Notes under the pieces: generated by a model
The model's input: the letters and a program-made list of their open reading frames with translations, nothing else
Database searches by the model: none
Told to the model about the DNA's origin: nothing
Assembly (NCBI RefSeq): GCF_006345805.1
Contig: NW_021830189.1
Location: forward strand, 1-5,033
Source of the DNA: Octopus sinensis
Lineage: Eukaryota
DNA: 5,033 nt
Direction of reading: 5' to 3'
Shown: positions 1 through 5,033 of the stretch, piece by piece
How positions within the stretch are numbered: the first letter of the stretch is position 1
Layout: each line of letters starts with the position of its first letter
Program-made: the position numbers and the translations under genes

Positions 1-337
1 TTGTTTAAGAGGAAAACTAAACGGACATTTTGTTTTTTTATATTTTTATATATATTTTTTTCTTGTCTTTTTTCTCTCTTTTCCGTGTTAAGTCTGTGGG
101 TGTTGTGAGGGGATGGTGGGTATTGTGGGATCTTGTGGATGATGTGGGCGTGAGGGTGGTGTTGACGGTTGTGGTGGTGGTTCTGTTGAAAGATTCATGC
201 CTCATCTATAAAGGCTGATTGTTATCATTTAGGAATCAAAGAACCATTTTCTTTTCTTTTATCAAAGATAAGTCGAAGATATTCGATACCTTGCGTTCGT
301 CGTCATCACTGCCATTCCTTATCATCGTATTAGAAAT

Positions 338-365
338 AATGATGATGATAATGACGTCGATGATG

Positions 366-411
<46 letters not shown>

Positions 412-418
412 GGTGATG

Positions 419-491
<73 letters not shown>

Positions 492-522
492 CAACAATAA
501 TAATAATAGTAGTAGTAGTAGT
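338..522. repeat. Compound trinucleotide microsatellite (ATG)14-(AAT)22-(AAC)3-(AAT)4-(AGT)5
   Basis: Read directly: ATG x14 at 368-409, AAT x22 at 421-486, AAC x3 at 487-495, AAT x4 at 496-507, AGT x5 at 508-522, with degenerate AAT/GAT units from about 338. Confidence 0.98.
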
Positions 523-805
523 AAGCCTTGATGCAGTACCAGGCAGTGGCTCTCGTGGCTTCTGATTGGAAGTGTTATCATGTACATTGTTTTGTCTTCG
601 TATAAAATGATGGGCTACAGCAAATATTCTGCTCAATACCACATATTTGCTTGTCAGTTGTTTGACCTTAACAGCCTTAATGACTGACAATATGTGCATT
701 TCTGATCACGATCGCAAGTAGTGGGGGAGAATCATAGCCATGTGTCGAGAGGGATTCTTTGGAGTTTAAATAATTCACCTCTGGAAACATGGGTGTTTGG
801 TACAA
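523..805 (+). mobile_element. Partial copy of a dispersed non-coding repeat, flanked by (AAT)n-type arrays
   Basis: 733-805 aligns ungapped with the reverse complement of 4958-5030 (60/73 identical by hand). Complex sequence between trinucleotide arrays. The 5' boundary is inferred from the end of the array. Confidence 0.7.
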
Positions 806-1008
806 TATAATGATAATAATAATATAAAGACGACTGAAATATACGTTTCTCAAGTTCGATCCGATGATCAGCGGAGATAGAGGTCGATGCAAATATGACG
901 ACGATATTACTTAATATTCGATAGATATTTCACTATAATGATGTCAATTTATTTATATATATATATGTATTTCCCTTCTTTATGTTTTCATGTTTGGATT
1001 AACTTTAT

Positions 1009-1042
1009 ACACACACACACACACACACACACATACACACAC

Positions 1043-1090
<48 letters not shown>

Positions 1091-1098
1091 GTATATAT
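1009..1098. repeat. (AC)n-(ATAC)n-(AT)n compound microsatellite
   Basis: AC run about 1009-1044, AT run 1053-1080, degenerate AT to about 1098. Confidence 0.97.
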
Positions 1099-1513
1099 AA
1101 ATGATAGACAATATCAAAACAATGCATAAAACATACACAAAAATAAATGAACGCAAAGAATATAAATTTTTTCAAGAATGAAAAGCAATTCATTTAATAT
1201 TGATCTTTTGGTGATCAGAAAATTTTATTTAAGTTTAAAATAATTCTTGAGTTTGGAACCAGAAGAAAACAAAAAAAAATGAATAAATGAAAATAACATA
1301 AAAATAGAACATTTTAAGTAAATACACAGATTTTAAGTAATTACACAAACAATCAAACAGACAAATAAATAAATAAATAAATAGATACTGAAGAAGGAAT
1401 GAAAAAAAAATGAAAGAGTTGAATAAGGTGAAAAAATAGGATTGAAAAAATATATCGGAGATACTGAAAATTGCATCGCGATATATAGTAAATAAAAGGG
1501 AAATTTAGAAAAT

Positions 1514-1909
1514 ACACACACACACACACCACGCACACACACGCACGCACACAAACACACACGCACGCACACACACACCACACACACTCACACACATATA
1601 TAAGGATATACACACATATATACAATCATACATATATACAGATATACGTATATGCAAACAATTAAAAATATATAGTTATATATAGTTATACATACAAACG
1701 TACATACGTATCTTCGTATTTACACATACATATAAATATATACTCATACGTACACACACACACACATATATATGTAAATGCTTACGTATAAATATATATC
1801 TCTACATACATACAAGTATATATTCATACATAAGTACAAACGTACAACTATAAATACATATATACGTGTAAACATACGAATATATGAACATCTATTAATA
1901 GAAACATAC

Positions 1910-1970
<61 letters not shown>

Positions 1971-1975
1971 ATATA
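1514..1975. repeat. (CA)n/(CACG)n microsatellite grading into degenerate (CATA/TA)n low-complexity DNA and a (TA)n tract
   Basis: CA/CACG units about 1514-1595, degenerate TACA/TATA units to about 1915, near-pure (TA)n about 1916-1975. Confidence 0.93.
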
Positions 1976-2059
1976 CCACGTACACGGTATATTTATTATA
2001 TAGATAGAGTCACATAATCGTATTACAACATTCATACATTTCCATACGCACATACTTTC

Positions 2060-2188
2060 ATGTGTAGTTAGAAGTATGATTCGTAATCATGAGATTTCGG
2101 GTTCGATCCCCAAGAGAATGAGCGCCTTTAACGGCGGTGCCCCAGCATGGTCGCAATTCTCGAGCTTGAACTAGTAAAAGTAAAAGTA
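2060..2188 (+). mobile_element. Short tRNA-derived SINE (tRNA-like head, short body, TAAAAG tandem tail)
   Basis: Box-B/T-arm GGGTTCGATCCCC at 2099-2111. Anticodon-like hairpin ATGA/TCAT (2076-2079/2087-2090) with a 7-nt loop TTCGTAA. No acceptor stem. GC-rich body GGCGGTGCCCCAGCATGG; tail GTAAAAGTAAAAGTA. Confidence 0.65.
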
Positions 2189-2199
2189 CACACAACACA

Positions 2200-2202
<3 letters not shown>

Positions 2203-2233
<31 letters not shown>

Positions 2234-2244
2234 TATATATATAT

Positions 2245-2287
<43 letters not shown>

Positions 2288-2295
2288 TATATATA
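2203..2295. repeat. (TA)n microsatellite, left flank of the hammerhead element
   Basis: Direct reading; a few interruptions, and A-rich just before the element. Confidence 0.97.
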
Positions 2296-2565
2296 CTTAA
2301 AAGAGAGATCTCAGTAAACCACAGCACTTAAACGGAAAACAACGCAGGCAAGAGAAAGAAGTGACGACAATCATTCTATATTAAGTCACCTACGGACGTA
2401 CGTTTCGAAATTAAGTCATAGGAAAGCATAAAAATTAAATAATTATGTGTTACCCGACTACTTTTCTCCTCAGCGTAGACTCTACAATTATGAATAATTG
2501 TGGTATTAAATTGGAGTCACTAGAAGACATCACCCTCACTCATGGTATCAGAGCGAGCGTAAGCC
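2294..2565 (-). repeat. Inverted repeat arm A (left; reverse complement of 2883-3158)
   Basis: TACTTAAAAGAGAGATCTCAG...GAGCGAGCGTAAGCC matches the reverse complement of GGCTTTAGCTCGCTC...GAGATCTCTCTTTTAAGTA, with about 13 differences, mostly 1-nt indels. Confidence 0.98.
2383..2482 (-). ncRNA. Type I hammerhead ribozyme, minus-strand copy; predicted cleavage between 2395 and 2394
   Basis: Minus strand reads GAGUCUACG-CUGAGGA-(stem II)-GAAA-CGUACG-UC/CGUAGGUGACUU. The core is identical to the plus-strand copy; stem I 5' strand lacks one C. Confidence 0.82.
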
Positions 2566-2570
2566 GTGAC

Positions 2571-2666
2571 CTTTTAAGTAGAAAAATAGCCATAACTATT
2601 TGACTGCTATTTCTAAATTCGGTGTGTGGTGAGGCAAATCGTTGCTAAACCCTTAATTACTTAGTA
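2571..2666 (+). repeat. Direct repeat B, copy 1 (tail)
   Basis: CTTTTAAGTAGAAAAATAGCC...CCCTTAATTACTTAGTA equals 3149-3242 except for two 1-nt insertions. Confidence 0.98.
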
Positions 2667-2882
2667 TTACTTAAACTTTCCTCGAATGGGGCTTTTAAAT
2701 GCCGAAATCTACTTGGTGAAATTAATGATTACTCCAAATTAATTGATTTCACCCTATATTATTATTGATAACCATATTTCATCCCAGTAAATGACCGCAA
2801 CATCTTATTCTGGCAGCACGCTGGTGGGAGGAGGATGGTGACATACTTTCATTCACCCTTTGAATTTGGTGGTACTGGTAAT

Positions 2883-3158
2883 GGCTTTAGCTCGCTCTGA
2901 TACCATGAGTTGAGGTGATGTCTTCTAGTGACTCCAAATTTAATACACAATTATTCATTATTGTAGAGTCCTACGCTGAGGAGAAAAGTAGTCGGGTAAG
3001 ACATAATTATTTAATTTTTATGCTTTCCTATGACTTAATTTCGAAACGTACGTCCGTAGGTGACTTAATATAGAATGATTGTCGTCACTTCTTTCTCTTT
3101 TGCCTGCGTTGTTTGCCGTTTAAGTGCTGTGGTTTTACTGAGATCTCTCTTTTAAGTA
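2883..3158 (+). repeat. Inverted repeat arm A (right; ribozyme-sense orientation)
   Basis: Reverse complement of 2294-2565. Confidence 0.98.
2966..3066 (+). ncRNA. Type I hammerhead ribozyme; predicted cleavage after GUC at 3054
   Basis: Stem I CCTACG 2970-2975 / CGTAGG 3055-3060 (alternatively CTACG/CGTAG extended by GAGTC/GACTT across a GT bulge). Core CTGAGGA 2976-2982 (CUGANGA). Stem II 2983-3042 closed by GAAA/TTTC. GAAA 3043-3046. Stem III AC/GT with GTAC loop (3046-3053). C17 at 3054. Confidence 0.88.
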
Positions 3159-3239
3159 AAAAATAGCCATAACTATTTGACTGCTATTTCTAATTCGGTG
3201 TGTGGTGAGGCAAATCGTTGCTAAACCCTTAATTACTTA

Positions 3240-3242
<3 letters not shown>
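3149..3242 (+). repeat. Direct repeat B, copy 2 (3' end of the element)
   Basis: Matches 2571-2666. Its first 10 nt overlap the end of arm A, and it runs directly into (TA)n. Confidence 0.98.

Positions 3243-3303
<61 letters not shown>
3241..3303. repeat. (TA)n microsatellite, right flank of the hammerhead element
   Basis: Direct reading. Confidence 0.97.
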
Positions 3304-3627
3304 CATACACGTTGTAATGTAAGGGGAATTAAGAAGTAAAATAAGTAAAATGCACATTGGAAATTTAAAGACGGCCATGATTGATCGTTAGCCACTACAC
3401 ACATTTTTTCTCTTCTTGTTTCTCTCCTTGTTTTTTTCTGTGTCCCTTTCTGTAGAAGAGCGTAGGCTCGAAATGTAAAATACTTTTTCTATTCCTGAGC
3501 GTTATACTAATACATCTGTTTGTTTTGTACACCACCTGTGTTCGTCTTTTGTTTTTTTCGTAAACTCTCCCTATATATATATCGTAAAGTATATTTGCCA
3601 TCAAAACGTGGCTGACCCGTAAGGGAT

Positions 3628-3654
3628 GATGCTACTCTAGATCTTAGCCCAAAG
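3628..3654 (-). other. U2 snRNA-like 27-nt fragment
   Basis: Minus strand CTTTGGGCTAAGATCTAGAGTAGCATC versus recalled metazoan U2 nt 14-40 CTTTTGGCTAAGATCAAGTGTAGTATC gives 23/27. The rest of U2 is not recognisable. Confidence 0.3.
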
Positions 3655-4237
3655 AGGACATCTTCTCCAGCTGGCTATTGACACATTGTCTGTGCCCAAT
3701 CAGTATTTGCAAAGGGAAATCATCCTTCCCATCTCCAACCTGACTCGATACACACAGACCGGAGTATGCTTGTATGTTCGCATATATATGTATGTTTTTA
3801 TTGCTTATATGCACATAAGTTTGTATGCCTACTTGATATACGGTTGTGTGTTTGTTTGATGTGTGTATTTGTCCGCATTTTCGCTTGTATGCGCATAAAT
3901 CCATACGAATGTGCATTCGTGTACTTGTGTAAATACGAACTCTTACGCAAATATCAATCGCTTATACATGCGACCAATCGTAAGTTACCAGGCGACGGCG
4001 GAAGTAAGCAGACAAGAATAAACAGAAAGAAAAGAGCCCAAAAGATAAAACAAAATTAATATATATCACGCACAATTCCTTGCTCTAATCAATTCCAAAT
4101 ATTTGGTTCACACGATTAACTAAAATGACATCTCTACATATAACCACGGTTTACGAATGCTGAGTCTTTTGGTCTTCCGTATTATTTTGTTTAAACTATC
4201 AATCTGTATCTGTTGTTACTGTTTGTCATTGTTTCAG

Positions 4238-4285
4238 ATGTAGGTGGCGAGTGGATGGAAACTTTTGCGCGTCAGAACAAAACGC
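4238..4285 (+). CDS. Possible 48-nt internal coding exon (phase 1-1), peptide (D)VGGEWMETFARQNKT(R); product unknown
   Basis: T-rich tract ending in TTTCAG (4232-4237), a 48-nt stop-free and relatively GC-rich segment, then GTAAAG at 4286. The donor is weak and no homology is recognised. Confidence 0.3.
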
Positions 4286-4403
4286 GTAAAGATATTTCTT
4301 CCGTTTTTTTTTTACGTTCGGTGTGCAAATACAATCGAAGTTATTTTTTAAATCCTTTTCGAATTGGCAATTTACATTACCAAGTCCTAGAGTCGACGGT
4401 ACT

Positions 4404-4527
4404 GATCAACTGGTAGACTCGCGAGCGCGTCGGACAGAAGGCTTTGAACTATTTGTGCTGATGGCCAATTTTGCTTTCATCCTTTCGACTCAAAAGTTTA
4501 GACCTTGTGCCTATAGAAGAGAGGACT
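4404..4527 (+). mobile_element. Degenerate, internally deleted SINE remnant followed by a simple-repeat tail
   Basis: CpG-rich head CTGGTAGACTCGCGAGCGCGTCGGAC, motif TTTGCTTTCATCCTTTCG, and CCTTGTGCCTATAG immediately before (CTT)n(ATT)n. Resemblance to Octopus SINEs is recalled, not searched. Confidence 0.45.
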
Positions 4528-4536
4528 CTTCTTCTT

Positions 4537-4609
<73 letters not shown>
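4528..4609. repeat. (CTT)13-(ATT)14 compound microsatellite
   Basis: Direct reading: CTT run 4528-4566, ATT run 4567-4609. Confidence 0.98.
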
Positions 4610-4610
<1 letters not shown>

Positions 4611-4727
4611 AGGAACAGTTCTCACTTTAAGATGCCGCATCTTTCGTATTTCAATTTCCAGGCCCTTATATTTACTTAATTTGTCAAATTATTTTACAGA
4701 TATATTTTTATCAGTGGGAACACTTAC

Positions 4728-5033
4728 ATTATTATTATTGGGTGAGAGAGCATTGCATGCCATCAAAGTGACACCGGGGTAAAATATACGAAGCCCAGTA
4801 TACCCATGATGACTACCCATATAATAATGGTACACCAGGCACATGCATCACAACCATATGTGCGCGACATGGTGATGTGGGGCCCAGTTAAAATTTTTTT
4901 CAGGTCGAGTACCCCATCCTGCTCAAAAGGTCCCTGAATGAGGGTTGTTTAAGAATGTTGAACGAAACACCAATGTTTCCAAAGGTGAATTATCCAAACC
5001 TCAAAGAATTCCTCTTAACATATGGTTATGTTG
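4728..5033 (-). mobile_element. Second copy of the dispersed repeat seen at 523-805, with an (AAT)4 3' tail; truncated by the window edge
   Basis: 4958-5030 is the reverse complement of 733-805 at ~82%. The minus strand ends ...CTCTCTCACCC-AATAATAATAAT (4739-4728). Confidence 0.7.

Follow-up and report, generated by a model that had tools for sequence, protein, structure and literature searches.

Animal non-LTR (non-long-terminal-repeat) retrozymes are characterised in PMC7229834 as elements that are devoid of open reading frames (ORFs), low in GC and equipped with type I hammerhead ribozymes, and that produce a highly self-paired RNA whose unit-length form has been shown in animals to circularise. 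Their consensus lengths span 51-972 bp, monomer copies are common, and it has been argued that they derive from the pseudo-LTRs (pLTRs) of Penelope-like elements (PLEs) (Cervera & de la Pena 2020, PMC7229834; Li, Clavereau & Pollet 2026, bioRxiv 10.64898/2026.07.22.740005). The present analysis concerns a 5,033-nt stretch of Octopus sinensis DNA (NCBI RefSeq assembly GCF_006345805.1, contig NW_021830189.1, positions 1 to 5,033 of the forward strand), referred to as the window, which contains an insertion of ~950 bp within a (TA)n microsatellite. With moderate confidence, this locus is read as one insertion of an ORF-less PLE derivative into (TA)n, with a non-LTR-retrozyme-like unit of ~578 nt.

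The insertions left by PLEs have a characteristic anatomy. They are often 5'-truncated and arranged in partial tandems that create pseudo-LTRs, often with an inverted 5'-truncated copy beside the upstream pseudo-LTR and with a 'tail' of 30-40 bp at one end only, and their hammerheads lie near the 3' end (PMC8557442). Naiad PLEs insert preferentially into (TA)n, as do almost all Hydra families and probably Neptune PLEs, and canonical hammerheads are always carried by Hydra PLEs; nonautonomous Chlamys PLEs share their 3' ends with autonomous families (PMC8557442). In AT-rich DNA, a purified PLE protein was shown to cut both strands of the target and to extend them, and reverse transcription starts at two adjacent internal RNA sites, the tail being the sequence between them (PMC11167929). 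Metazoan type I hammerheads usually combine a short helix III with a palindromic loop and are thought to act as dimers (PMC4209133).

The insertion in the window consists, in order, of an inverted copy A', 10 nt of A, and the segments B, C, A and B. Gapped alignment of the inverted arms, 2294-2571 (A', - strand, taken as its reverse complement) against 2877-3158 (A, + strand), gave 269 identical columns out of 284 (94.7%), and the remaining 15 columns comprised 8 substitutions and 7 indel columns. An ungapped repeat tool, which together with the gapped alignment was used to delimit A, split the arms into 129 nt at 99% and 94 nt at 86%. Of the 8 substitutions, 4 are crowded into the 13 nt nearest the spacer, so that the inner limit of the arms is known only to within ~13 nt. 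A' is a 5'-truncated copy of A, is without B, and directly adjoins an upstream partial copy at 2571-2667 (+ strand), which is composed of the last 10 nt of A (CTTTTAAGTA) and B1 and constitutes the upstream direct-repeat pseudo-LTR. This copy was aligned with 3149-3243 over 97 columns, 95 of which were identical (97.9%), two 1-nt indels being the only differences; because the repeat begins with the final 10 nt of arm A, it crosses the A/B border unbroken.

Segment C (2668-2876, + strand, 209 bp) is non-coding, begins TTACTTAAAC, and has no repeat partner in the window, no ORF and no Pfam match. A total of 305 bp of ordered sequence separate the ~280-bp arms. Taken by itself, the direct part at 2571-3243 amounts to 1.17 head-to-tail units with a period of 576-578 bp (pseudo-LTR B...B), the unit being ~578 nt long, ordered B-C-A, with a GC content of 36.7%. 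B ends TTACTTAGTA, so written beside the start of C it can be seen that 7 nt (TTACTTA) are common to both, exactly at the B|C junction (2658-2677), where they could mark a template switch or jump or could belong to the native unit. Across all frames of 2280-3260, stop-free stretches reached 54 codons at most, and those of the element had no Pfam match at E<=1; within these limits, no reverse transcriptase (RT)/GIY-YIG ORF of an autonomous PLE is present in the element. The first-pass annotation, prepared from the letters of the sequence, had described ~275-bp inverted arms, a ~95-bp direct repeat that follows the left arm and recurs at the right terminus, and a lack of coding capacity, and all three descriptions agree with these alignments and searches; the spacer given there as 216 bp is unique, as claimed, and is 209 bp long, the choice of boundary explaining the difference.

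A complete type I hammerhead core is held by each arm A, at 2970-3060 on the + strand and at 2389-2479 on the - strand, with three helices in type I order and helix I open. On the + strand, helix I is formed by CCUACG (2970-2975) and CGUAGG (3055-3060), which make 6 bp, and the core is made up of CUGAGGA (2976-2982), GAA (3043-3045), A3046...U3053, and C3054 at position 17, after which cleavage is predicted. The invariant positions of the core (C3 U4 G5 A6 N7 G8 A9, G12 A13 A14, A15.1-U16.1 and H17) are all present, and the same is true of the - strand of the left arm, where cleavage is predicted between 2395 and 2394. Helix II is closed by the conserved G10.1-C11.1 pair (G2983-C3042) and 3 further pairs, and helix III (3046-3053) consists of 2 bp (A-U and C-G) with a palindromic GUAC loop, the palindrome being ACGUACGU. 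CTGANGA sites occur in the element only at 2976-2982 (+) and 2467-2473 (-), one per arm. The left hammerhead differs from the right one by a C missing in helix I and a G>C in helix II.

Hammerheads were searched for using a descriptor in which a helix I of 5 bp or more was followed by CUGANGA, by a helix II stem of 4 bp or more around no more than 70 nt, and by GAAA, a short helix III, and UH. Exactly two copies were found in the window; when the whole window was shuffled 2000 times with dinucleotide composition preserved, and both strands were searched, 0 were found, and the motif is therefore not a chance match. The Rfam model Hammerhead_1 gave 24.0 bits (E 4.5e-4) on 2970-3060 (+) in a 131-nt search and 20.1 bits (E 0.009) on 2389-2479 (-), and Rfam scans of wider stretches detected neither copy. 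The extended helix II arm (2983-3042, + strand), a 60-nt imperfect hairpin closed by GAAA:UUUC, has paired ends and a minimum free energy of -11.6 kcal/mol, which was matched by 7 of 200 shuffled sequences (z -2.2). The type I hammerhead proposed in the first-pass annotation is thus present, in both arms; the annotation, which referred to type I hammerheads in the pseudo-LTRs of PLEs, is to be corrected in that the hammerhead here sits in the inverted arms A and not in B.

Folding of the RNA differed sharply between the strands. The segment 2790-3150 (+) had a folding energy of -113.7 kcal/mol, which 0 of 100 shuffled sequences equalled (z -5.58), and the z-score of the - strand was -1.39; when the 578-nt unit was folded as a circle, the corresponding values were -5.96 (+) and -1.26 (-). 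In the hammerhead-strand fold 64% of the bases are paired. The main contributor is a long-range stem of 51 bp on the + strand, in which 2793-2854 at the end of C (5' side) pairs with 3073-3134 at the end of A (3' side), so that the hammerhead is enclosed. Nine of its pairs are G.U, and the DNA-level mismatches that give G.U number 7 on the + strand as against 1 on the - strand, an asymmetry that points to RNA of hammerhead polarity. It could have arisen through selection for RNA pairing or through RNA-level A-to-G or C-to-U changes before reverse transcription, both of which are compatible with it. The participation of C in a stem specific to the hammerhead strand suggests that C is a functional part of a non-coding RNA and not an arbitrary remnant of truncation.

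Both ends of the element were directly adjoined by microsatellites in the output of Tandem Repeats Finder (TRF), namely (AT)n at 2203-2295 on the left (period 2, 47.5 copies, 88% matches) and (TA)n at 3241-3307 on the right (period 2, 34 copies, 93% matches), which are presumed to be the two halves of one target. Both outer ends are outward-facing 3' ends of the element, which read ...CTCTTTTAAGTA|(TA)n on the left, where the 3' end of A' faces the left tract (reverse complement), and ...AATTACTTAGTA|(TA)n on the right. The two 3' termini are alike, being AAGTA|(TA)n and TAGTA|(TA)n. The right outer end alone carries B2 (3159-3243, + strand, ~85 nt), and B is absent from the left outer end. 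B2 lies between the 'no-tail' terminus of A, ...TTTTAAGTA (3158), and the terminus ...ACTTAGTA (3243), as placed by alignment; together with 3149-3158 it makes up the downstream pseudo-LTR copy, and it may be read as a one-sided 'tail' in the sense of PMC11167929. Measured from the hammerhead cut site (after 3054), the no-tail terminus is 104 nt away and the tail terminus 189 nt, and the insertion is without poly(A). By comparison with the published descriptions, five features correspond to PLE hallmarks, namely the layout, the outward orientation of both 3' ends, the target in (TA)n, the position of the hammerhead ~100 nt before the 3' end and, less certainly given its length of ~85 nt, the tail-like presence of B on one side. 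The locus-level hallmarks given in PMC8557442 and PMC11167929 that lent themselves to comparison are all seen here: the unit is partly repeated in tandem, a 5'-truncated inverted copy adjoins it, one end alone is extended (by roughly twice the published tail length), the target is (TA)n, and the hammerhead is close to the 3' end. The interpretation made at first pass is thus partly supported, in that the anatomy, the hammerhead and the lack of an ORF hold, while membership of a dedicated non-autonomous family mobilised by an RT/GIY-YIG partner is a proposal.

When the locus was compared with described systems, the non-LTR retrozyme was judged to be the closest match in function and form. The locus resembles metazoan non-LTR retrozymes in being ORF-less, in its type I hammerhead with a short helix III and palindromic loop, in its GC content of 36.7%, and in its unit length of 578 nt, which is within 51-972 bp. 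The highly self-paired RNA of the ribozyme strand, the proposed dependence on PLEs, and the existence of monomeric genomic copies are further likenesses. It is unlike them in its helix II, which has ~60 nt here versus ~4 bp, and in that contacts between loop 1 and loop 2 are not evident here; the adjacent inverted copy and one-sided tail are likewise features of this locus, neither of which is mentioned for retrozymes in the passages of the two sources that were consulted.

With the hammerhead-bearing, (TA)n-targeting PLEs of the Hydra and Neptune clades and with PLE insertions in general (Craig et al. 2021, PMC8557442), the locus shares the pseudo-LTR partial tandem, the inverted 5'-truncated upstream copy, the one-ended extension, the hammerhead near the 3' end, the insertion in (TA)n and the lack of poly(A). 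Unlike those elements, it is without an RT/GIY-YIG ORF, measures 950 bp rather than ~3-4 kb, has a tail of ~85 nt rather than 30-40 bp, and has its hammerhead within the inverted repeat A, the direct repeat B being without one. A parallel for the termini is offered by Poseidon PAc of Anolis carolinensis, which was studied in vitro (Frangieh et al. 2024, PMC11167929): the two 3' termini here fit alternative starts of reverse transcription with the tail between them, the outward 3' ends at left and right agree with two strands having been cleaved and extended, the target is AT-rich, and the presumed start of reverse transcription is ~100 nt downstream of the hammerhead cut (104 nt here versus 85-92 nt in PAc). 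In PAc, however, reverse transcription starts inside the ORF and the tail is 30-40 bp, whereas here there is no ORF and the element is known from its sequence alone. Nonautonomous Chlamys PLEs, such as MRC1 of Chlamydomonas (PMC8557442), are similar as ORF-less derivatives with pseudo-LTRs and head-to-tail insertions, but they belong to green algae and to the clade with an N-terminal endonuclease (EN), are generally without canonical hammerheads, and target (CA)n or (C)n.

The following course of events is proposed. Tandem master copies of the ORF-less element would be transcribed, and an RT/GIY-YIG protein of a PLE, supplied in trans, would nick both strands of an AT-rich (TA)n tract. Reverse transcription would begin at either of two internal RNA sites, one ending ...TTTTAAGTA and giving no tail and the other ending ...ACTTAGTA and including the 85-nt tail B. 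Complementary DNA (cDNA) primed on one target strand from the no-tail site would become the 278-nt inverted copy A', and a second cDNA, begun at the tail site with the other strand as primer, would extend beyond a single unit on a template that was multimeric or circular, as a result of which B would be duplicated as a pseudo-LTR. The hammerhead, with its 2-bp helix III and ACGUACGU palindrome, is predicted to cut the multimeric RNA as a dimer after C3054, and such dimer cleavage may release a unit-length RNA able to circularise, as in retrozymes. This locus itself is probably inert, because there is one hammerhead per strand and because a read-through transcript would fold into ~280 bp of double-stranded RNA. 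More tentatively, and with considerable doubt, the locus may be the first observed copy of a distinct retrozyme family with a ~60-nt helix II and a 578-nt strand-specific quasi-rod RNA, in which case the inverted copy, the 85-nt tail and the (TA)n target would be direct evidence, in the genome, that the RNAs of retrozymes become integrated through PLE reverse transcription, with its two strands and two start sites.

Several points weigh against reading the locus as an ORF-less, retrozyme-like PLE derivative. It is one locus only, and copy number, tandem masters, circular RNA and an autonomous partner are all unobserved. The definition of a retrozyme tandem calls for at least two hammerheads in one orientation, and here there are 1.17 units with one hammerhead per strand; the locus is therefore called retrozyme-like and not a proven member, and it would count as a 'monomer' copy. 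The tail of ~85 nt is roughly double the published 30-40 bp, and TTACTTA across B|C could signal a template jump and not native contiguity of B and C. The Rfam scores of 24.0 and 20.1 bits are below the gathering score of 34, which is due to a 56-nt insertion in helix II. This 60-nt helix II is far above the 4-8 bp usual in metazoan and PLE hammerheads, and its fold is only modestly better than those of shuffled sequences. Finally, the two hammerhead copies are without covariation support because they are almost identical.

The main rival explanation, and a serious one, although on balance unlikely, is that the locus is a heavily 5'-truncated, dead-on-arrival copy of an autonomous PLE, C-A-B being the last ~575 nt (3' untranslated region/pLTR) of a 3-4 kb element. 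The copy at 2571-2667 would then be a second, shorter one produced by a template jump, A' would be the usual inverted truncated copy, and there would be no dedicated family. All of the PLE hallmarks listed above fit such a truncated element equally well, and the 7-nt TTACTTA microhomology is located exactly at B|C (TTACTTAGTA / TTACTTAAAC), as a template switch predicts. This explanation nevertheless requires one more template switch than does the copying of a tandem or circular 578-nt template; moreover, no trace of an ORF or of RT/GIY-YIG was found in C or downstream of the hammerhead, and C belongs to the long stem that is specific to the hammerhead strand.

Searches for further copies were performed on DNA collections made up of metagenome contigs, viral contigs, and bacterial and archaeal genomes, with no animal genomes among them. 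An exact 22-mer from the hammerhead had no match in the metagenome or viral contigs, and two further words of 21-22 nt had no match in the viral contigs. A degenerate hammerhead pattern retrieved 17 metagenome loci, all of which shared only the 13-mer of the pattern and are chance matches. A 21-mer that spans CUGAGGA and the start of helix II had one exact match in the bacterial and archaeal genomes, on contig JAXHUM010000061.1 of a Thermodesulfobacteriota metagenome-assembled genome (L018, 4818-4838). This contig was rejected as a homologue, as no similarity extends beyond the 21 nt and ~0.3 chance matches are expected in 596 Gb. At the protein level, the 54-aa peptide of the element had no word-sharing candidates in the protein collection, exact-match look-up of ten ORFs of the window returned none from it, and a 613-aa concatenate of stop-free peptides from repeats of the window had no match at E<=0.01. 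A literature search for the helix III string returned nothing related, only unrelated bacterial work, and a search on PLEs in shrimp or cephalopods returned nothing useful, mostly shark ecology.

An origin at the level of DNA only, with a fortuitous hammerhead, was considered quite improbable. The element would in that case be a foldback or long terminal inverted repeat (TIR) transposon of the kind known as miniature inverted-repeat transposable elements (MITEs), or would have arisen by inverted and tandem duplication through replication template switching in an unstable (TA)n tract. Inverted repeats of 280 bp around a 305-bp spacer are what the former would look like, TA-rich targets are also typical of Tc1/mariner-type MITEs, and (TA)n tracts are fragile; that no second copy was found in the metagenome, viral, and bacterial and archaeal collections, which lack animal genomes, is also in its favour. 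The true ends of the element are not inverted repeats, however, as the left end TACTTAAAAGAGAG and the reverse complement of the right end TACTAAGTAATTAAGG have only 4 nt (TACT) in common, and if the element is instead taken to end at the arms, the identical sequence after the left and right arms is left to coincidence. A full hammerhead core with three helices was obtained in 0 of 2000 shuffles, and a strand-asymmetric stem rich in G.U pairs is not expected of DNA-only events. A TIR or foldback transposon, the former having been named at first pass as the outcome that would overturn its proposal, was therefore rejected on the ground that the ends share only TACT; a TA duplication is not distinguishable inside (TA)n.

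An assembly artefact, either a chimeric palindrome or a mis-join in a region rich in repeats and microsatellites, is very improbable: the locus does lie between long (TA)n runs, and inverted and tandem structures of the PLE type are known to cause assembly problems (PMC8557442), but artefactual palindromes are normally identical and contiguous, whereas these arms differ at 15 of 284 columns (5%) and enclose 305 bp of ordered sequence, on which grounds an assembly palindrome was rejected, and the structure is internally coherent with unique sequence on both sides. In the twin priming of L1 elements, adjacent and essentially non-overlapping parts of one RNA are copied and a poly(A) end is left. 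Priming from both strands there also joins an inverted 5' segment to a direct 3' segment; here, in contrast, the inverted copy covers all 280 nt that the direct one does, each copy begins at a defined internal site, and poly(A) is missing, and L1-style twin priming was rejected for the overlap and the missing poly(A).

With respect to novelty, the idea put forward in the first-pass annotation is largely right as to the kind of element, and the annotation had raised the possibility of an undescribed family. Elements that are ORF-less, bear hammerheads and depend on PLEs have been published as non-LTR retrozymes (PMC7229834; bioRxiv 10.64898/2026.07.22.740005), so that the concept is not new and 'undescribed family' can only mean a new family within it. 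The kind of element is already described, as animal retrozymes, and the locus is a good example that represents a new family at most and not a new class; current understanding is not overturned. Should the family reading be true, a ribozyme, an RNA fold and the integration scars of a PLE, with both strands primed and two start sites used, would stand side by side in one locus. This would help to tie animal retrozymes mechanistically to PLEs, a link for which the arguments so far have been that the two occur together and that their pLTRs are similar. The range of shapes accepted for the type I hammerhead would be widened as well, as standard Rfam thresholds and most descriptors overlook a long helix II. 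For annotation, elements of this kind escape ribozyme scans run at default settings, and it is possible to take them for foldback or TIR elements.

The rest of the window is AT-rich, non-coding, and dense in microsatellites and fragments of dispersed repeats. A fragment that resembles a tRNA-related short interspersed nuclear element (SINE) is located at 1976-2202, between (AT)n tracts at 1906-1975 and 2203-2295, and the same (TA)n tract seems to have taken this second, unrelated insertion just upstream of the hammerhead element. SINE-like repeats flanking the element may resemble cephalopod SINEs. The tRNA-like part of the fragment (2051-2121) reached 20.9 bits with the Rfam tRNA model, whose gathering score is 29, and was not called as a tRNA by ARAGORN; the sub-threshold tRNA match of the whole-window Rfam scan was treated as an artefact. 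The microRNA-like matches of that scan (mir-3149, mir-297 and others) were likewise dismissed as artefacts, being located on low-complexity TA/TG tracts and far below their gathering scores. Microsatellites of the types (ATG)n/(AAT)n, (AC)n, (AT)n and (CTT)n/(ATT)n are located at 360-520, 1000-1100, 1508-1600, 1906-1975 and 4525-4612, and most of the 'inverted repeats' reported by the repeat tool are explained by (AAT)n near 420-510 and (ATT)n near 4560-4610. One other dispersed repeat, unrelated to the hammerhead element, forms an inverted pair at 733-808 and 4955-5030, in which 62 of 76 nt (82%) are identical over a separation of 4.1 kb; the right copy runs into the end of the window, so that the repeat is probably longer.

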